Assembly (NCBI GenBank): GCA_047495785.1
Contig: JBLDXI010000026.1
Span: forward strand, 124,001-188,000
Length of the DNA stretch: 64,000 bases
Direction: 5' to 3'
Source: Lepidodermella squamata
Lineage: Eukaryota > Animalia > Gastrotricha
Made by a program: the position numbers and the translations under genes
Notes under the pieces: generated by a model
Told to the model about the DNA's origin: nothing
The model's database searches: none
Seen by the model: the letters and a program-made list of their open reading frames with translations, nothing else
In this document: positions 1 through 11,266 of the stretch, one piece after another
Numbering within the stretch: the stretch's first letter is position 1
How the letters are laid out: each line of letters opens with the position of its first letter

Positions 1-2225
1 GTCATCCCTGACCTAGTTTCGGACAATTATCTGCTAAAAAGGGTGTCTAAATCGCTTTGAACGTCGCAGCTGAGCTCGATGTGGGTGTTATGGCTTTCGG
101 AATACCGTAGACTACCGTAATCGACCCCGCTGAACATTGTTATGACATTTTTTTCACGATGGGATTCATCCTTGACCTAGTTTCAGACAATTATCTGATG
201 ATGATCTCGGAATTTCGCGTCAAACTCACCTTGACGATGGCAGCTGAGCTCAATTTATGTGTTATGGCCGTCGGTATATCTTAAACTACCGTAATCGACC
301 CTGCTGGACATTGTTATGACATTTGTTTCATGATTGGATTCATCCCTGACCTAGTTTCGGACATTATTCTGTTCTTAGGTTGGGAATTTCGCGTCAAACC
401 CACTTTGAACGTCGCAGCTGAGCTCGATGTGGGTGTTATGGCTTTCGGAATACCGTAGACTACCGTAATCGACCCCGCTGAACATTGTTATGACATTTGT
501 TTCATGATTGGATTCATCCCTGACCTAGTTTCGGACATTATTCTGTTCTTAGGTTGGGAATTTCGCGTCAAACCCACTTTGAACGTCGCAGCTGAGCTCG
601 ATTTGGGTGTTATGGCCGCCGCGATGCCGTGAAATACCGTAATCGACCCTGCTGAAGATTGTTATGACATTTGTTTCATGATTGGATTCATCCCTGACCT
701 AGTTTCGGACATTATTCTGTTCTTAGGTTGGGAATTTCGCGTCAAACCCACTTTGAACGTCGCAGCTGAGCTCGATGTGGGTGTTATGGCTTTCGGAATA
801 CCGTAGACTACCGTAATCGACCCTGCTGAAGATTGTTATGACATTTGTTTCATGATTGGATTCATCCCTGACCTAGTTTCGGACATTATTCTGTTCTTAG
901 GTTGGGAATTTCGCGTCAAACCCACTTTGAACGTCGCAGCTGAGCTCGATGTGGGTGTTATGGCTTTCGGAATACCGTAGACTACCGTAATCGACCCTGC
1001 TGAAGATTGTTATGACATTTGTTTCATGATTGGATTCATCCCTGACCTAGTTTCGGACATTATTCTGTTCTTAGGTTGGGAATTTCGCGTCAAACCCACT
1101 TTGAACGTCGCAGCTGAGCTCGATGTGGGTGTTATGGCTTTCGGAATACCGTAGACTACCGTAATCGACCCCGCTGAACATTGTTATGACATTTGTTTCA
1201 TGATTGGATTCATCCCTGACCTAGTTTCGGACATTATTCTGTTCTTAGGTTGGGAATTTCGCGTCAAACCCACTTTGAACGTCGCAGCTGAGCTCGATGT
1301 GGGTGTTATGGCTTTCGGAATACCGTAGACTACCGTAATCGACCCCGCTGAACATTGTTATGACATTTGTTTCATGATTGGATTCATCCCTGACCTAGTT
1401 TCGGACATTATTCTGTTCTTAGGTTGGGAATTTCGCGTCAAACCCACTTTGAACGTCGCAGCTGAGCTCGATGTGGGTGTTATGGCTTTCGGAATACCGT
1501 AGACTACCGTAATCGACCCTGCTGAAGATTGTTATGACATTTGTTTCATGATTGGATTCATCCCTGACCTAGTTTCGGACATTATTCTGTTCTTAGGTTG
1601 GGAATTTCGCGTCAAACCCACTTTGAACGTCGCAGCTGAGCTCGATGTGGGTGTTATGGCTTTCGGAATACCGTAGACTACCGTAATCGACCCCGCTGAA
1701 CATTGTTATGACATTTGTTTCATGATTGGATTCATCCCTGACCTAGTTTCGGACATTATTCTGTTCTTAGGTTGGGAATTTCGCGTCAAACCCACTTTGA
1801 ACGTCGCAGCTGAGCTCGATGTGGGTGTTATGGCTTTCGGAATACCGTAGACTACCGTAATCGACCCCGCTGAACATTGTTATGACATTTGTTTCATGAT
1901 TGGATTCATCCCTGACCTAGTTTCGGACATTATTCTGTTCTTAGGTTGGGAATTTCGCGTCAAACCCACTTTGAACGTCGCAGCTGAGCTCGATTTGGGT
2001 GTTATGGCCGTCGCGATGCCGTAATCGACCCCGCTCAAGATTGTTATGAAATATTTTTCACGATTGGATTCATCTCTGAACTAGGTTCGAACATTTATCT
2101 GTTGGTGTTTTGGAATTTGACGTCAAACTCGCCTTGACAATTGCAGCAGAGCTATTGCAGGTGTTATGGCGGTCGCAATATCTTGAACTACCGTAATCGA
2201 CCCTGCTAAACATTGTTATGACATT
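1..2225 (+). repeat. Tandem array of ~13 units of 174 bp (left arm of the transposon)
   Basis: The motif CATCCCTGACCTAG (or a close variant) starts at 3, 167, 341, 515, 689, 863, 1037, 1211, 1385, 1559, 1733, 1907 and 2071. The period is 174, with two 164-bp units. Central units are nearly identical and edge units are diverged. Confidence 0.97.
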
Positions 2226-2814
2226 TACACTTGCTGAACATTTTTATGGCATACGATTCATTATGCAGCTATTCCCGACATATTTATAGACTCTGTAAAA
2301 TATGTTAGCCATAGCCCTCGTGCTCTCTGGAACGTCTGCTTAGCGTGCGTTGCAACATCACTTTCGCACGCACTTCTGTCCCACCTTTAGGATAAGAGTC
2401 TATTTGAGTCCATTCGAGACGAATCGATGGTATTATTCAATAATTTGACGCCTCGATATACATAACTTAAGTTTACGCCGTTAAAAGGGTCACCGGGTCT
2501 GGGACAACATGAACGAATGTTCGAACTCGCTGCAGGTGCATACCTAGATATAATTATTGCCAGTGAAACGATAATATGCGTTTATTTTTTGTTTTTTTTT
2601 GGTAAATATATTCCAATATGATGTGTGATTAAAATGAAAAAGAACCACGGAGGTCCTGTGACTATTAAAAATGTACCGCCGAAAGGTTATAGTATGGTAT
2701 AGGTGCTAAAAAGCGTGAGCAACCGTAGTCGTACCTTTGGAAAATTGATAGTATAATCATATTGCTACGTTCAAATGGAAACTTCGAGTTCCGAAAAAAA
2801 TCTATCAAATGATT

Positions 2815-5800
2815 TTATAGGTCAATGACGTAATCGCCGTCATTTATCGCTGGCTCCGCGTCACGTTCAGTTTGTTCCGGGGTTAGGGCAAGGACAACAT
2901 ATATGCCCAGCCATTTTTTGAGAAGGGCCGAATCCGGACGCAAATAACGCCGTATCTCTTTCCCCTCAGTAACCATTGTGTAATCGCCGGGAAAAGAGCC
3001 TGGCGTAAGAAGAGCATAATCTGAAGTGCCGGCTTTTCTTGCCACAACGGAAACGACTTCATAGCTGAGAAAGATGCTTTTATATCAGACAAAAAATCCC
3101 GAAATAAAATGTTACCTCGAATTCCGAAAATTTATGTTCGCGAGGTTGAGACATTGGTTGACCTGAATAGTCGCTTCGATTGCAATAATGACGACGGGGC
3201 ATGGCGTAATTCGGCCCTCATGCTGGTGCTTACTTGATGTTATCAATTTTTTCCCCTCGCATTTTAATCTGAAACATAATTCATTGCCCAAAAATAAAGG
3301 AGTCGAGTAATCATTTGCTAATTTTACCCGCTGGAGTCCGTAAATTGACAATCAGAGTAACTCTGCGAAAAACGGCTTGACAGCCTCTCCTCGATCTGGA
3401 GAGCATTTGGGAAGCTATAAAATTTAGTGGCTTATAAGCGCTATACAGTGTGTAGTATTTTTCCCACCTGTTTTGACCTGCCTCGATGGTTAGAAATGGA
3501 TTCGTGATGAGCTGCGGCTGCTCAGGCTGCAAACTGTTGCTCTGGCAGAAGCAGTTTTCGCACGCCCCCATTTTTCGCATTATACCGCACCCGTCAGTTG
3601 CGAAAATGCGCTCACATAGCTTACTGGGCGACAGGTCCTCCAAATTGTAGATCTTACCGCCATCATGTCGTAGAACTGCCAGCTCTGGGTACATGAGCTC
3701 AATGATGGAGCCGCGTCTAGCCCTTAGCTCAAATCGCGTGGCGCTGTTGTCGTTAACTGCCTCCAAATAAGAAGCCCATTTGCCTGGGCACAGTTTTCGG
3801 CAGATGGGAGCCATGCTCAAGGACAAATAGTCGAAAATTCGAGCGTTTTGTAAGTCAACCATTTGGCTTGCAAATCCAGAGTTTTGCAATTTATCCAACG
3901 CGCTAAGGCCCAGGGCATAGCTGATCTCCTGGCCCTCCGATGCCTCCGACGCCAGGTCGTTGAACTCCCAAGCACCCTCGCGCCTTTGGGCTTTTACCTC
4001 CTTCTCCGGACTTTTGGTAGCATTAGACTCCTTTGGAGCTTTGGGTTCCTTTGGAGCTTTGGTCTTCTTGGGAGCTTTAGGTTCCTTCGGAGCTTTGGTC
4101 TTCTTTGGAGCTTTGGGTTCCTTCGGAGCTTTGGTCTTCTTGGGAGCTTTGGGTTCCTTCGGAGCTTTGGTCTTCTTGGGAGCTTTGGGTTCCTTCGGAG
4201 CTTTGGTCTTCTTGGGAGCTTTGGGTTCCTTTAGATTTCCGCGAGGTGTCGGCGGGTTCACAGCGTTTGGTGGATCTAGAGCTGGCGAAAGCTTTGAAAG
4301 TTTCGGAAGCTGAGAGTCAATCTCGGGAAGTTCAGCTAAACCAGCTAGCCTGTTTCAGTAGGTTATTGAAAATGTCAAATTAACTTTGCATAAAAGAGCT
4401 ATTACGTAGAAAGAGGTCTTTTCTGGGTCACTGGTCGCTGTTCCAACCTGCTACTGCTGAGATCCATTGGCTCATCAGGGTAATCAGAGTAGGGAGGTGG
4501 GGGATCGTCTGTTAGGCAAACAATTAGCATGTTTTATGGTGAGCATAATACAAGACCTTGGGAAATCTCCGGAATGTCGATGGCGTCGGGCATTTGCGGC
4601 TCGATTTCGCTCAGGTCATTATCAAAATCATCGCCTTCAGCGATTATTGGCTCGATCAGACCTTTGCGCTTCGGCTGCGGACAACAGAAAAACAGTAAAT
4701 TGGGGTAATATTTTTCATACCCCTTCAAAATTCCTTTTTTCCTGTTAACCAACTGCCATTGAGGCAGACCATTTAACCCACAACGCAAGTCATCGATGAG
4801 ATATAGGTCGTTGTTGAATAGTCGAAGCGAAACATAATGGCCAATGTATTTGTCGGTCGCATCCAATCTGTCGTCCTCATTGCCGTAGTACCCGACGCCA
4901 TCGACTATTGTAGACGTGGGGTGTTGAAAGAGCGTGGCTGCGTGTAAGGAATACCTAATGGGTGATTTTTAAGTGGCTTATTCGAAAAAATATTAAAACA
5001 AACTCCAAGTCTCCCCATTCCAAAGTTTTCGGAGCGTTGTCTATGAACTGAGCGAAGGGTACTTCAAATCCTTGAAGAACCTCAATTGCGATGAAAGGAT
5101 ACGGCCTGGCCGAATGGTCATGCCGATGCGGGCCGGCAAGTGTGAAGCCCACGTGGCCGACTGTTTTGCAACTGAAACAATCCAGTGCTCCGCTAGGTTC
5201 CAGCAGCTCAGCTTTCAAACGATCGGAAAGGTTCAACAATGTTAATTCCAAGACTTCGCTCTTCTTAGGGCCGTCGTCCTCTCTGTTCAAATTTCAAATT
5301 TTAAAGAATTTACTTAGTTTAAAATAGCAAATTACACGGCAAAGTAAGTTCCCAAAATCGGGTTATAACGGCGTTTTGATAGTGGTTGATGTTTGCATGA
5401 AATACATCTCTGATAACTGCTCTCAAGGAAGCAATTTTCCAATTGACTCATGTGATGCAGCCACGCTGGAGCGCCGCCCTTACCGTCCAACATCGTTTCC
5501 GCAACGTAATTGGATTTTTTATCTTTGTCACTGAGGCTCTGCTCAATCGCATTTTGCGGGAAAACTTTCCGCATGTATTCGAACCGAGCTGACATCGCCA
5601 TGTAGCTTCCTGCTGAACGTTCCATTTGATTGGCTGTGCGAAGGCTTTGGAAAAAATAGCCGAATTCCTTTCCACAAAAACTGGCGGGGTCAATGTGACC
5701 CAAGCAGTTAACAATGCTGTCGAAGGCACACGTGTTTCTTGTGTCGAATTTTTCAGCCAACAAGCCACGCGGCGATAGGGACATCTGATGAAAGCCACCG

Positions 5801-8800
5801 CCATTCCGCATGAGAAAAATGCCGCCATCCAACTGTTCCGAATTGATTACCTCCATTTTGTCCGAATTAACGCCGCCAACTCTGTCTTTAGCTGCTGGTT
5901 CTTTGATCCGTGATTCTTTCTCAGAGTTAGCCATCGAGTGACCTACACCCTGACCATTGCCATCTTCGAACGAAGCAGTATGTGGGGAATCGGGAATGTT
6001 TGAACCGGTTTCTTCCTTCTCCATGGCCGCTCTGGCCAACTTTTCCCTAGCAGCAAATTTCGAGTATCTCGAATTTATCATTTTGTTCCGTTTTTTGGTC
6101 TTTGCAACAAGGGTTTCCTTGCGATGACTCCTGACCCCTTTTCCGAACTCCTCCACCACAGAATCTGGATCCAGCTGGGAATCAAGGTTTGCATCGACAT
6201 CAGAAGGGTCTTCGATAGGAACAACTAACAGCCGATTAGCAATTTCTTGTCTCAGCTTACGAACCACTTGGCAATGCGTGTCATTCTTCCGCCCGTCAAG
6301 ATCGTTGTTCTTCACGTCGTTCATAGTGAACTCCGCCAGCCCATTTGTGTAGTGTCCAGGTGCTTCCGGAACATTACTGAGAAAATTTTAGAAAACATTT
6401 TTGGAATAATAGCAACTTCAATTCTGCGAGAGAAATGAATGAATCTCATCAATCATTTCATCTGAAATTTCAAGTTTTCTACAGCATATCTCATTAACAC
6501 CTTCACTTCAAATACCCTTTATAGACTGACTACAACAACCCGAAAACCAACAATGTAGTTTGGGCGAATATAAATTCAGCGCCGTTGTGTGAAACATATT
6601 TTGGGCGAGAATCGCACCCCGTTTATGGAATTTAAGCAAACAAAGATATATGATCGAAAATCAATCAGATCAGAACAGCCGTCCTATACCGGAAAAAATC
6701 TGAAAAGTAAGAAATCGAGAAAAAATACGTGCCGCGTGAATGGATCTGGAAATATTTTCCGATTTCAGAGGCATTTTTCCGACGGTTGAAAGCGCGAAAT
6801 TAAAATTAATTCAAAATTAATTCAAAATAATAGCGCATAATGGAGAAGCCGCGAGGCCGTTAGGGTGCGGCCAAATGATCACCCTTTCAGGCCGATACAG
6901 CTGAAGTACGGCAAATAACACCACGTTGAAGGCGGATTTTCTCCAGCGGTGATTTCTGTGATTCCGGCGGTTGTAGCCTGCCATCTAAGCCCAATTGCCG
7001 CCCAATAATGGGTTGATCGTTCTAGGAATATGTCCTAATTTCGACACATTTTTTGAGCGCTCTATATAGTTTTTCTTATTATTTTTTACGTTTTTTGCCA
7101 CCCTGTTGTTTTTATTGCGGAAAATGGCTAAGAAAATTAAATTTTTTCAACAAATGCTGGAAAATATTGCAAACTCGTTACACCTCCGGTAGTACGGGCA
7201 GTACGGAGTCCGTGAAAATAAATAATCTCAAATAATAAAATGCTGGAGTCTCAAATTCAGTGCTGGAACTCTAAATATAATAGAGTGCGCACTGGGCACA
7301 CCAATTGGTAAGCTTACAAACGTTTAACCGCCATTCCTCGCACGAAAACTGCCGAGTAGCAAGGGAAAAGATGAATTAAATTTTTCATCACGGAATCCAT
7401 CGCGAACTTGGAGTGATGCTCATTGACCTCAGCGTTGTCTGCATTGAGTTCACCCTCGGCAGCTTCGATTTCGAGCAGTGCCGAATCGAAAATGGGGCGG
7501 AACATCGCGTAAAATCCGCTTAAGTCGATATACCTTTGAGATCGAAACTTACGCTTGAGCGATAATTCCTCATCGATTCCGAGTTTATCCTTGTCAACAA
7601 CTGGGCCCATGTTATCTGGCCAGTCGAATTCATTATCCTCAACGCTAGGCGGCGGCTCCGCATCACCTGGAATTTCCACCGGCTCAAGTGGTTGAATCAT
7701 CATTTCCTGTTGCTTTTGCTCAAAATCTGCTAGAGCTTGCGAGCAAAGATCGGTCTGAAAATTCGAGCAAAAAATGAGGACCATTAGCCTGAATACAATC
7801 CTGGCCTCCTTCATGTCCGGGCAGTATTGGAATGTAGCGAACGCTGTAAGAAAGAGACTTTTCGTTGCTTTCTTCACAGCTTTGCGGCCGCGACTTGACA
7901 GCATTACCGAAAGAGCCTTTTGAAGATGTGCAGAGCATAAAATGATCAGGATCAGATTATTTGGGATCACTTGGATTACATCGCCGCCTTTCAGCGACTC
8001 GAATAAGATAATCAAAGTTCGCTTCAGCGAATGATTGTTGAACACTTTACTGACGGCTTGCATTAAGCAATACGAGTGGTCAACTACGACCCCATACGGC
8101 AGAGATATAGAGCCGTAATGTGTCCAATCTGCTTTCCAAAAGCCGAGCAAATACTGAAAAGCGACGGATCTTTGGTCAGATGTCAACAAGTCAGCATGCC
8201 GAACTTTGGGCCCTTCCAGGACTGGCGAAAATGACACGACGGGCATATACGCGACTTTTTTCCCAGTCAACCAGTCGTTTTTTACTGGCCCCATTGTGAT
8301 GTCAATACCAAACAAATAGAATCCTTTTGAATCTTGGGCAGTTTGTTTAAGCAGCTGTATCTGTTTGCCGAAATAATTCGCCGAATGAAGAGGCCTTACG
8401 CCGTAGGCGCGGATGAATTCCCCTTCTTTGAACTTGTTCGGATTCTCGGGATCATCGGGATTTTCGACACGTTGGCAATACAACTCTAACACCATATCAA
8501 CTTCGTCGTTAATATCTTTGCGAGCGCGAAGCCGATCCTCGGATCCAATTTTGGCGAAAGTCGAGCTATTTGGCAACTTTGTTTGAATATGCTCATGTGG
8601 TTTGGCTGGAGGAACATTGGCCTTGTCTGCCGCAGCCTTCAACGCCGAATACAAGCTTAGTCGAACTTTTGCAGGCTTTTCGTATCTCAGCCGACCAGCT
8701 ATAGCTTCACGTGCTTTTCCCGTGATTCGACGTGGCTTTGGCTTTCCAGCAACATGATTGATGGGCTTGTCCGGGTCCGGAATCAGTTCAATTTTGATAG

Positions 8801-9884
8801 AATCAATTTCCGAGTTATTACTGCAGAGGTCAGATTTCAAAGAGAATTGACGACACCCTCGACAGCTGCAGTACGCACGTCCAGCCAAGTCGTTTGTCTT
8901 TTTTCGGAGCTTAACCCACCGGTAATTAATAGTGCAATCCCCGCTGATTGCAGAAACTTTCGAGTCGAATAGATTAGCCCATTCGCCTTTCAAAGCGCCC
9001 TTATTGTCCACTTCAATCGACGCGAGCTCGGCCTTCGAAATATAAAATGTCAAATTGCTCGAAAGGCTGCTATCTGGCGAGACAGTAGCAGAATCCTTCT
9101 TGCCAACGGGTTTAGGTTGGAACAAGTGTGACATATGGCGCCTCATGAAAGTGTACAAATAGTTTCGATTTTCTTGGGAACTTAGATTGCATATTCGCCC
9201 AGCTATTCGCCCGAAAATGCCATCTTCCGGGGTTGGACCTGAAATAAAGAGCATTCATTTACTTGGAAGGATAGCTGTAGCTGAATTCGGCTGGGTCGGC
9301 TCAAATCGGCTGGGTCGGCACACTATTACTGATAATTCTTACGCTTCTCTATCATATTAGGATATAATGTAGAGCTAACCTCTGAGAGCTCGGGTTACAC
9401 TGTTTAATTTCCATCAATTGTTTCAAATAGGAAAAATAGGTTAAAATAGGAAAATAGGAAAAGTTCCCAGGCTAGATTTCTTAGCCCAATATTCTTTTCT
9501 CATAATAGGTAATCAAGCTATATGTATACGCAAATACTGGCTTTACAACAAAATGCGTCTTCTATTTTAAAAATTTGAGCAGAAGCTCCCGCCGACCCTC
9601 CTCGGGATGGTGAAAACCGGCTATGTCCGAAAATAAATAAAAAATCGAAATAATTATTACGAATAAAAATCAATAATGGTATTCTGATTAATCTTGCTGC
9701 TTCCACTTATATCAAGGCTCAGGTAAAATTAAGTAAAATACAGCGGCTATTATGCCCAACACCTATAAACCTATAAAACGTACACACCTGTTCCAGCAGG
9801 TATCAGTGGCTCAGATACCATGTAATCGCTAATCAACTTCATCAGCGTGGCTTTATCAATATCAGTTAGAGCAATCGAAGCCAT
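2815..9884 (-). CDS. Spliced MULE/NOF-like DDE transposase fused to a USP-like cysteine protease and a second inactive USP-like domain (~1,736 aa, 10 exons)
   Basis: Hand-built exons, all GT-AG and phase-compatible: 9884-9788, 9238-7318, 6376-5336, 5282-5004, 4954-4557, 4508-4406, 4349-3468, 3414-3328, 3268-3116, 3064-2815 (5211 nt). Transposase motifs: GIDITMG (D1), VVVDHS (D2), CSAH (MULE CxxH), YTNGLAE (E). Protease motifs: NTCAFDS Cys-box, CISC/CFSC, and YSLHAA...GHYV...IDD His-box. Confidence 0.85.
4033..4232 (-). repeat. Coding 36-bp (2x18-bp) minisatellite encoding (KEPKAPKKTKAP)n
   Basis: Repeated ggagctttgggttccttc / ggagctttggtcttcttg, about 5.5 units, in frame in ORF 3311-4261. 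Confidence 0.95.
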
Positions 9885-10726: not shown

Positions 10727-11266
10727 CGTTGTCCGGAACTAGGTCAAGGATGAATCCAATCGTGAAAAGAATGTCATAACAATTTTCACCGGGGTCGATT
10801 ACGGTAGTTCAAGGTATTGCGAAGGCCATAACACTTGAAATGACCGTAGCTGCGATCGTCAAGGTGAGTTTGACTCCAGATTCCCAACCTACCAACAGGT
10901 AATTGTCCGAAACTAGGTTAGTGATGACTCCAATCATGGAACAAATGTCATAACAATGTCCAGCAGGGTCGATTACGGTAGTTTAAGATATACCGACGGC
11001 CATAACACATAAATTGAGCTCAGCTGCCATCGTCAAGGTGAGTTTGACGCGAAATTCCGAGATCATCATCAGATAATTGTCTGAAACTAGGTCAAGGATG
11101 AATCCCATCGTGAAAAAAATGTCATAACAATGTTCAGCGGGGTCGATTACGGTAGTCTACGGTATTCCGAAAGCCATAACACCCACATCGAGCTCAGCTG
11201 CGACGTTCAAAGCGATTTAGACACCCTTTTTAGCAGATAATTGTCCGAAACTAGGTCAGGGATGAC
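10727..11266 (-). repeat. ~3 inverted copies of the 174-bp unit (right arm of the transposon)
   Basis: Reverse complement of the left array. The outer two units mirror positions 1-327; the inner unit is diverged. Confidence 0.95.

Follow-up and report, generated by a model that had tools for sequence, protein, structure and literature searches.

Why a transposon should carry two related protease-like domains in one and the same protein, and for what purpose the second of these, which lacks the residues required for catalysis, could have been kept, is the question raised by the first 11.3 kb of the DNA analysed here. The window, i.e., the whole stretch under study, comprises 64,000 nucleotides of the gastrotrich Lepidodermella squamata (assembly GCA_047495785.1, contig JBLDXI010000026.1, positions 124,001 to 188,000), and its first 11.3 kb are a DNA transposon in which a multi-exon gene on the minus strand is located between two tandem arrays. 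The gene is predicted to encode a transposase resembling those of Mutator-like elements (MULEs), followed by a first (c1) and a second (c2) domain with likeness to ubiquitin-specific proteases (USPs). An original prediction, made from the letters of the window alone, had taken c2 for a pseudo-enzyme which arose by internal duplication and may serve as a ubiquitin-binding or regulatory module. When followed up across the genome (121 Mb), in which at least six diverged families of the element (named A, B, C, D, H and I, the window copy belonging to family A) were identified, this observation was partly confirmed and its interpretation was supported: c2 is probably a catalytically dead, selected USP-fold paralogue of c1, which ends a single transposon protein and would fulfil a non-catalytic role therein.

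Common origin of the two domains

The relationship between c1 and c2 was derived from profile comparisons which, like all searches, alignments and folds described below, were carried out per exon or, in other families, on open frames spanning two exons. Alignment of c1 exon A (families A, B and C) with c2 exon A (families A, B, C and D) by hhalign yielded E=1e-7 at a probability of 94% over 114 columns, and the score was 49.9, while 100 column shuffles reached no more than 19.4 and the reversed profile 10.5. The second domain, which had been placed at 2815-3960 and described as parallel to the first block by block, was recovered there on the minus strand and collinear with c1, whereby its whole extent is now given as 3976-2815, downstream of c1 in the direction of the gene. 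Within the exon A profiles, the earlier pairings of SARFEYMRKVFP (c1) with ARRGSIIELMYP (c2) and of CISC with CENC are aligned as claimed, but NTCAFDSI was found to align with QNARIFDY and not with GLSALDKL, the latter being located about 20 residues further upstream within an insertion limited to families A and B. The single exon B of c1 corresponds to two exons of c2, these being an 87-nt mini-exon (hhalign E=0.0054, above 40 shuffles) and, in collinear order with it, exon B' (E=0.0039 with the revised exons, above all shuffles). The stretches HRHDH..PFIAIE of c1 and HQHEG..VVIIAIE of c2 were matched by BLASTP with E=0.001 and, before the exons were revised, by profile with E=5e-4; pairwise BLASTP of the long exons of c1 and c2 returned nothing, only the middle exon alone reaching the said E=0.001. 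Both domains furthermore have in common an N-terminal GG.Y..NGG hairpin, the motif ARF..M..FP and NP.L just before the first intron, features which go unrecognised by the Pfam USP model.

The intron positions of the two domains, which had been described as shared, were found to be so in one case and approximately so in the other. In families A, B and C, the phase-2 intron directly before the Tyr agrees in position and phase between the two domains (GT..AG reading). The c1 domain of family I does not have it, nor does the c2 domain of family H, in which exon B' runs directly into exon C. For the first intron, phase 2 is common to c1 and c2, but its positions differ by about 2 codons within an indel-bearing linker, its equivalence therefore being approximate only. 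In addition, c2 possesses a third phase-2 intron together with the mini-exon, neither of which was described in the original prediction; families A, B and C all conserve the protein encoded by the mini-exon and share its GG/GTAA donor.

In the exon A tree, a single branch parts all c1 from all c2 sequences (support 87/90), which fits one duplication older than the families. Judging by these sequence comparisons, c2 is a paralogue of c1 and probably originated when the entire domain, together with its introns, was duplicated once in tandem in an ancestor of the families. Within the same tree, the two domains of family A part company, c1 joining family C and c2 joining family B. In line with this, transposase and c1 of the window are closest to family C (59% identity for the C-terminal half of the transposase, 43-49% for c1) and c2 of the window is closest to family B (52-60% identity), and these different nearest kin suggest recombination between element families.

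Catalytic residues and selection

In c1 the Cys, His and Asp-Asp residues (codons in Table 1) are invariant in all families seen, with His and Asp-Asp documented in six of them. Hence c1 carries the catalytic Cys/His/Asp set of USPs, which c2 does not. The predicted loss of the c2 nucleophile holds true, as the respective column is occupied by Arg in families A, B and H, by Val in family C and by Lys in family D. No His is found in c2 exon C of families A (the window copy included), B and H, and since the window exon C is devoid of any His, its loss can safely be stated; the pairing of GHY with GDY, by which this loss had been illustrated, is without statistical support. A weak cross-match between c2 of family D and c1 of family H would place the His position at SDY of GTSDYALL rather than at GDY, so the residue matching GHY of c1 may be either of the two, with the weak match suggesting SDY. 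The invariant Cys residues of c2 are C121 and C130 of the exon A alignment, of which C130 is also present in c1 and looks structural.

The substitution pattern of c2 is that of a domain under purifying selection. For the three copies of family C, synonymous divergence (dS) of c2 amounts to 0.16-0.28 and nonsynonymous divergence (dN) to 0.04-0.07, giving a dN/dS ratio (omega) of 0.18-0.28, and within family B omega of c2 is 0.16. Between families A and B an omega of about 0.14 was obtained for c2 exon C, a comparison in which dS is saturated, and c2 turned out to be better conserved than c1 between these families (dN 0.32 vs 0.81). Open frames and conserved splice sites are found in the five families retaining c2 (A, B, C, D and H, i.e., 5/6), which share only 21-60% identity. 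As the window copy is in frame as well, the claim of a tandem pair kept in frame despite its deep divergence stands. Stops and frameshifts do occur in c2 of some insertions (the C17 copy, exon C of locus L031 and the C58 copy), but c1 is damaged in some of these copies too, which points to the ordinary decay of dead insertions.

Predicted fold

With USPs (MEROPS C19, PF00443) c1 shares the order of motifs, as Cys box, CxxC...CxxC, P.v.aIE strand, Y.L...GHY, YL.DD and LLFY follow each other in the USP layout, including two CxxC knuckles, the GHY His box, the Asp-Asp strand and the final hydrophobic strand. By ESM features, UCH clusters come closest to c1 (score 0.82), which was considered a lead only. 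Alignments in which MAFFT had misplaced exon fragments against contiguous rows (PFIAIE onto HYVALI; A8, A10-A13 and A15) were discarded, and the clean ones, A14 and A16, were folded. The model of the c1 N-terminal half (family B, 280 amino acids, alignment A14) shows a predicted local distance difference test score (pLDDT) of 70-93 for residues 1-144 and is nearest to the USP thumb, matching the N-terminal regions of USPs; in this model the Cys is located at the start of a helix, as is characteristic for the thumb. The model of the c2 C-terminal half (family H, 132 amino acids, alignment A16, built from c2 sequences alone) forms a sheet and reached a pLDDT of 69.5 and a predicted template modelling score of 0.65. 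Ten of the 11 top rows of a wide search with this model were USPs, matched on their C-terminal halves, i.e., the palm, with one unrelated chain tying, and Foldseek ranked USP15, USP18, USP28 and USPL1 first (E 0.04, probability up to 0.97). PAN2 and Sad1/USP39 were among the structural matches of both half-models. PAN2 (USP52) and USP39/Sad1 are host proteins with catalytically dead USP domains.

As two independent half-models each fall on the matching half of USPs, and the N-terminal halves of c1 and c2 are homologous, both domains very probably adopt the USP fold. The differences from USPs comprise an additional hairpin (about 17 residues) that separates GG..NGG from the Cys box, the CCP motif in which the c1 domain ends, the missing catalytic residues of c2 and the lack of any Pfam or profile match. 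Likewise, no relatives were identified in an exhaustive search of 1.84 billion protein representatives with the joint c1 and c2 exon A profile (0 matches), where mixing of the two copies may have lowered the sensitivity. Word-based searches of a 5.8-billion-protein collection with c1 and with c2 returned nothing, NCBIfam gave no hit on the exons, and the sole Pfam and NCBIfam matches were low-complexity ones to a Lys/Pro-rich repeat; the assembly's own proteins are seemingly not included in the protein collections searched.

Homology, loss of the catalytic residues and purifying selection, the features by which a pseudo-deubiquitinase is defined, are found together in c2, and with a fold that is probably kept it would be a pseudo-deubiquitinase and not a decaying relic. 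The original prediction had named as adverse outcomes either the lack of profile and structural similarity between the domains or a dN/dS near 1 with frequent disruptions of c2. What was found instead is the exon A similarity at E=1e-7, half-models nearest to the USP thumb (c1) and palm (c2), and omega values of 0.14-0.28, with some of the disrupted insertions being hit in c1 as well.

Counter-evidence and alternatives

Several results weigh against this assignment. None of the c1 and c2 exons of five families matched the Pfam models UCH or UCH_1, even at E<=10, and a six-frame search of the genome with PF00443 gave 59 host matches, none of which is located at these loci. Searching the PDB sequences with the profile of the c1 His box brought up chance rows only. 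The folds cover half-domains and derive from families B and H rather than from the window copy. Foldseek returned nothing for the c1 model, because half of this model is disordered, and the ESM-Atlas shape search with the c2 model gave generic beta proteins only (TM 0.3-0.4). Comparison of c1 exon C with c2 exon C by hhalign gave no sequence signal, neither with five nor with six families, and the earlier pairing of YSLHAA with YEVVSV did therefore not find statistical support. None of the RNA runs contains this stretch, and splicing and expression of the gene are predictions. Finally, a protease activity of c1 and a binding of ubiquitin by c2 are inferred.

The view that c2 is a functionless and decaying relic of the duplication, passively carried along, would account for the loss of all its catalytic residues, for a last exon that drifted past sequence recognition and for the stops and frameshifts in the three insertions named above. 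It is nevertheless highly improbable, as the dN/dS of 0.14-0.28, the frames and splice sites kept in five families at low identity, the better conservation of c2 than of c1 between families A and B and the concomitant c1 damage in disrupted copies all argue against it. A related proposal would be that c2 entered the protein independently, out of a host gene or another element, instead of by internal duplication. Here it can be argued that the histories of the modules differ, with c1 of family A going with family C and c2 with family B, and that recombination moves modules; against this stand the hairpin, the ARF..M..FP and NP.L motifs and the phase-2 intron before Tyr that c1 and c2 share, the lack of an outside relative among the 1.84 billion proteins or the host USPs, and the position of c1 and c2 as nearest kin in the tree, which render a separate origin quite unlikely.

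Turning from origin to nature, c1 and c2 could be papain-like or other alpha/beta modules, the USP matches then being an artefact of half-models that reproduce a common arrangement. This is unlikely, as two half-models from different families, different halves and different alignments rank USPs first, each on the matching half, and as motif order and ESM features point in the same direction. That c2 is still an enzyme, working via non-canonical residues or on another substrate, was considered since USP53 and USP54, both annotated as pseudoenzymes, proved to be active (PMC12037411) and since c2 possesses invariant Cys residues elsewhere (C121 and C130). With the nucleophile position being Arg, Val or Lys depending on the family, exon C devoid of His in families A, B and H, and C130 common to c1 and seemingly structural, this is barely credible. 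The reading of c2 as a dead but selected paralogue of c1 is therefore the one that is carried forward.

Possible roles of c1 and c2

For a dead paralogue kept beside an intact-looking protease, the following roles can be envisaged. The c1 domain would strip ubiquitin or a ubiquitin-like modifier off the transposase itself, or off factors of chromatin or repair where excision takes place. The c2 domain may provide a binding surface for ubiquitin or a ubiquitin-like protein, which would deliver substrates or chains to c1, or it may pack against c1 or the transposase and regulate it, by analogy with the dead domains of PAN2 and USP39/Sad1 within their complexes.

A more elaborate idea starts from the PPPY motif in the linker between c1 and c2. 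PPxY is the classic docking motif for the WW domains of NEDD4-family ubiquitin ligases. A conserved PPPY between the two domains renders a link to ubiquitylation plausible, though it proves nothing. A three-part device in which PPPY recruits a NEDD4-type ligase, c2 reads the mark or holds the chain and c1 trims it is doubtful. If it were true, such a device would set the stability of the transposase, its nuclear access or its engagement with chromatin, and would constitute a reader-eraser pair that arose by duplication inside a transposase, in a USP lineage beyond the reach of sequence searches.

Gene model and ends of the element

The gene model (Table 1) is based on canonical splice sites, uniform intron length, frame and conservation across families. 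All introns are of the GT..AG type and 48-59 nt long, the predicted frame is unbroken from the transposase to the stop codon and the window copy is intact throughout. The Glu motif of the transposase and the Cys box of c1 are located in one open frame (6387-5335), and hence the protease would be part of the transposase polypeptide. By this model the order of the protein is MULE-like DDE transposase, c1, PPPY linker, Lys/Pro-rich repeat and c2, in one long chain. The outermost 537 nt of the element ends (1-537 vs 10730-11266) are 93% complementary, whereby the left arm extends past window position 1, the left terminus being located beyond the window.

Table 1. Predicted features of the element by position in the window, listed in the direction of the gene
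Feature	Position	Strand	Remarks
174-bp tandem array, 5' side of element	10729-11201		2.7 copies, inverted orientation; feature extends to 11266
Transposase main open frame	7317-9254	minus	646 amino acids; motifs FGID, VVVDHS, LCSAH
Exon with transposase E motif and c1 exon A	5336-6387	minus	open frame 6387-5335, 351 codons; HYTNGLAEF..N..K
c1 domain, whole	5826-4672	minus	domain end near 4672, inside exon C
c1 exon A, domain part	5826-5350	minus	Cys box RNTCAFDS, Cys 5730-5728; first CxxC = CISC
Intron	5335-5283	minus	phase 2
c1 exon B	5282-5004	minus	second CxxC CFSC and PFIAIE strand; phase-2 introns on both sides
Intron	5003-4955	minus	phase 2
c1 exon C	4954-4557	minus	YSLHAA; GHY, His 4839-4837; YLIDDL, Asp-Asp 4794-4789; LLFFCCP
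Intron	4556-4509	minus	
PPPY linker exon	4508-4406	minus	DPPPPYSDYPDEPMDLSS; between c1 and c2
Intron	4405-4350	minus	
Exon with Lys/Pro-rich repeat and c2 exon A	4349-3468	minus	c2 domain part 3976-3476; QNARIFDY (Arg 3841-3839), ARRGSIIELMYP, CENC, NPFLTIEAG
Intron	3467-3415	minus	
c2 mini-exon	3414-3328	minus	87 nt; FPNALQIEERLSSRFSQSYSDCQFTDSS; counterpart of first half of c1 exon B
Intron	3327-3269	minus	
c2 exon B'	3268-3116	minus	LKCEGKK...HQHEGRITPCPVVIIAIE...; counterpart of second half of c1 exon B
Intron	3115-3065	minus	
c2 exon C	3064-2818	minus	YEVVSVVARKAGTSDYALL...GDYTMV...; 82 codons and stop (2817-2815)
174-bp tandem array, 3' side of element	55-2226		12.6 copies; inverted counterpart of the 10729-11201 array

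The PPPY stretch of the window (DPPPPYSDYPDEPMDLSS) recurs in family B as SPPPPYSEH..MDLSS (locus L031, about 5225-5401), and in family I PPPY is found twice upstream of c1 (PMDPPPYSLVDNSEVWEF; locus L042, about 6050 and 5650). Just upstream of c2, a 36-bp tandem repeat (4031-4231, 5.6 copies, 96% matches) encodes (KAPKEPKAPKKT)n, and a similar KAPKVPKAPK run occupies the same place in family B, this basic, Lys/Pro-rich linker being reminiscent of histone H1 tails. In family C (L032, 4635-3655; also L034 and L036) the c2 exon encodes a C2H2 zinc finger (CQTCGKIYKKKAWLTKHEAKH) upstream of c2, which takes the place of the Lys/Pro repeat of families A and B.

Families in the genome

Family A consists of the window copy and a damaged copy on contig 17, family B of five and family C of three copies, and families D, H and I are represented by one locus each. 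The order transposase, c1, c2 was found in families A, B, C and H, and family D is an internally deleted copy which retains the N-terminal part of the transposase, c1 exon C and c2. The second copy of family A (L037, G000:C17:915001-925000) is 98-99% identical to that of the window; most of its c1 exon A is gone and its c2 exon A is frameshifted, and the window copy may hence be the sole intact element of its family. The family I locus (L042, G000:C13:3058001-3067000) holds a c1-like domain with intact Cys box and GHY/DD that is devoid of the intron before Tyr. Within the 9 kb fetched for this locus, neither c2 nor a recognisable transposase was seen, and the locus may represent either a fragment or a single-domain gene that has been domesticated.

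The transposase

The signature described for MULE and hAT transposases is a DDE triad in which the second Asp is followed by a (C/D)(2)H motif and the Glu is preceded by a W (PMC5499845). In the transposase studied here, the motif order is FGID, about 73 amino acids, VVVDHS, about 47 amino acids, LCSAH, an aromatic residue and HYTNGLAEF..N..K, with spacing taken by eye. LCSAH fits the C(2)H motif, and at the position where W is expected before the Glu, W is found in families B and C, Y in family A and F in family H. The DDE-type motif set is thus consistent with the MULE/hAT signature, as judged by eye. The ESM-Atlas features of the transposase are nearest to MULE clusters (score 0.92), and the feature neighbours carry PF10551. 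With MULEs the element further has its long inverted ends in common; it differs in that these ends are 174-bp tandem arrays, in that the transposases of families A, B, C and H gave no match to the Pfam models MULE (PF10551) and Transposase_mut, and in that a word search of 5.8 billion proteins found no relative. NCBIfam likewise gave no match to the window transposase. A target-site duplication, which in MULEs measures 9-10 bp, was not seen, as the left terminus is located beyond the window.

Relation to known systems and significance

Close parallels to c2 are found in host proteins, as PAN2 and USP39/Sad1 likewise possess a USP fold that lacks the catalytic Cys and/or His and is maintained by selection as a structural or binding module beside another enzyme. 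Unlike here, these are single-copy host genes without a live paralogue in the same chain, whereas in the transposon the dead copy follows an intact-looking one inside the transposase protein. For transposons, proteases of the ubiquitin and SUMO systems have been described repeatedly, these being Ulp1 in MULEs and Ginger1 and OTU in Helitrons and Ginger1 (PMC2836005; PMC9741609), and a C19 domain is found beside an IS5-like transposase in Trichomonas (PMC2836005). VTD deubiquitinases were reported from Helentrons, with one zebrafish Helitron possessing two VTD domains, and multi-copy inactive VTD domains were reported from insects (PMC9741609); for the two domains of the zebrafish Helitron, activity data on both are given (PMC9741609). 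What these share with the element described here is the union of a transposase, by fusion or by joint coding, with a cysteine protease acting on ubiquitin or ubiquitin-like proteins. Differing from the Ulp1, OTU and VTD cases, the fold is USP-like, here within a MULE-like element. Unlike the VTD pair of that Helitron, the second copy is catalytically dead in all families seen. In the literature, no description was found of a USP-like domain in a MULE-type element, nor of a live/dead USP pair inside a transposase.

The element would add a USP-like lineage, fused within one exon to a MULE-like transposase, to the ubiquitin proteases repeatedly acquired by transposons and viruses (Ulp1, OTU, VTD). 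As this family is invisible to Pfam and to a search of 1.84 billion proteins, similar domains have probably been missed in other genomes. What distinguishes it from the other cases is a catalytically dead twin that remained under selection throughout the divergence of the families, and this points to a non-catalytic job, in binding or regulation, which would be indispensable to the element. The pair may therefore serve as a compact system in which pseudo-deubiquitinases can be studied beside their active paralogues.

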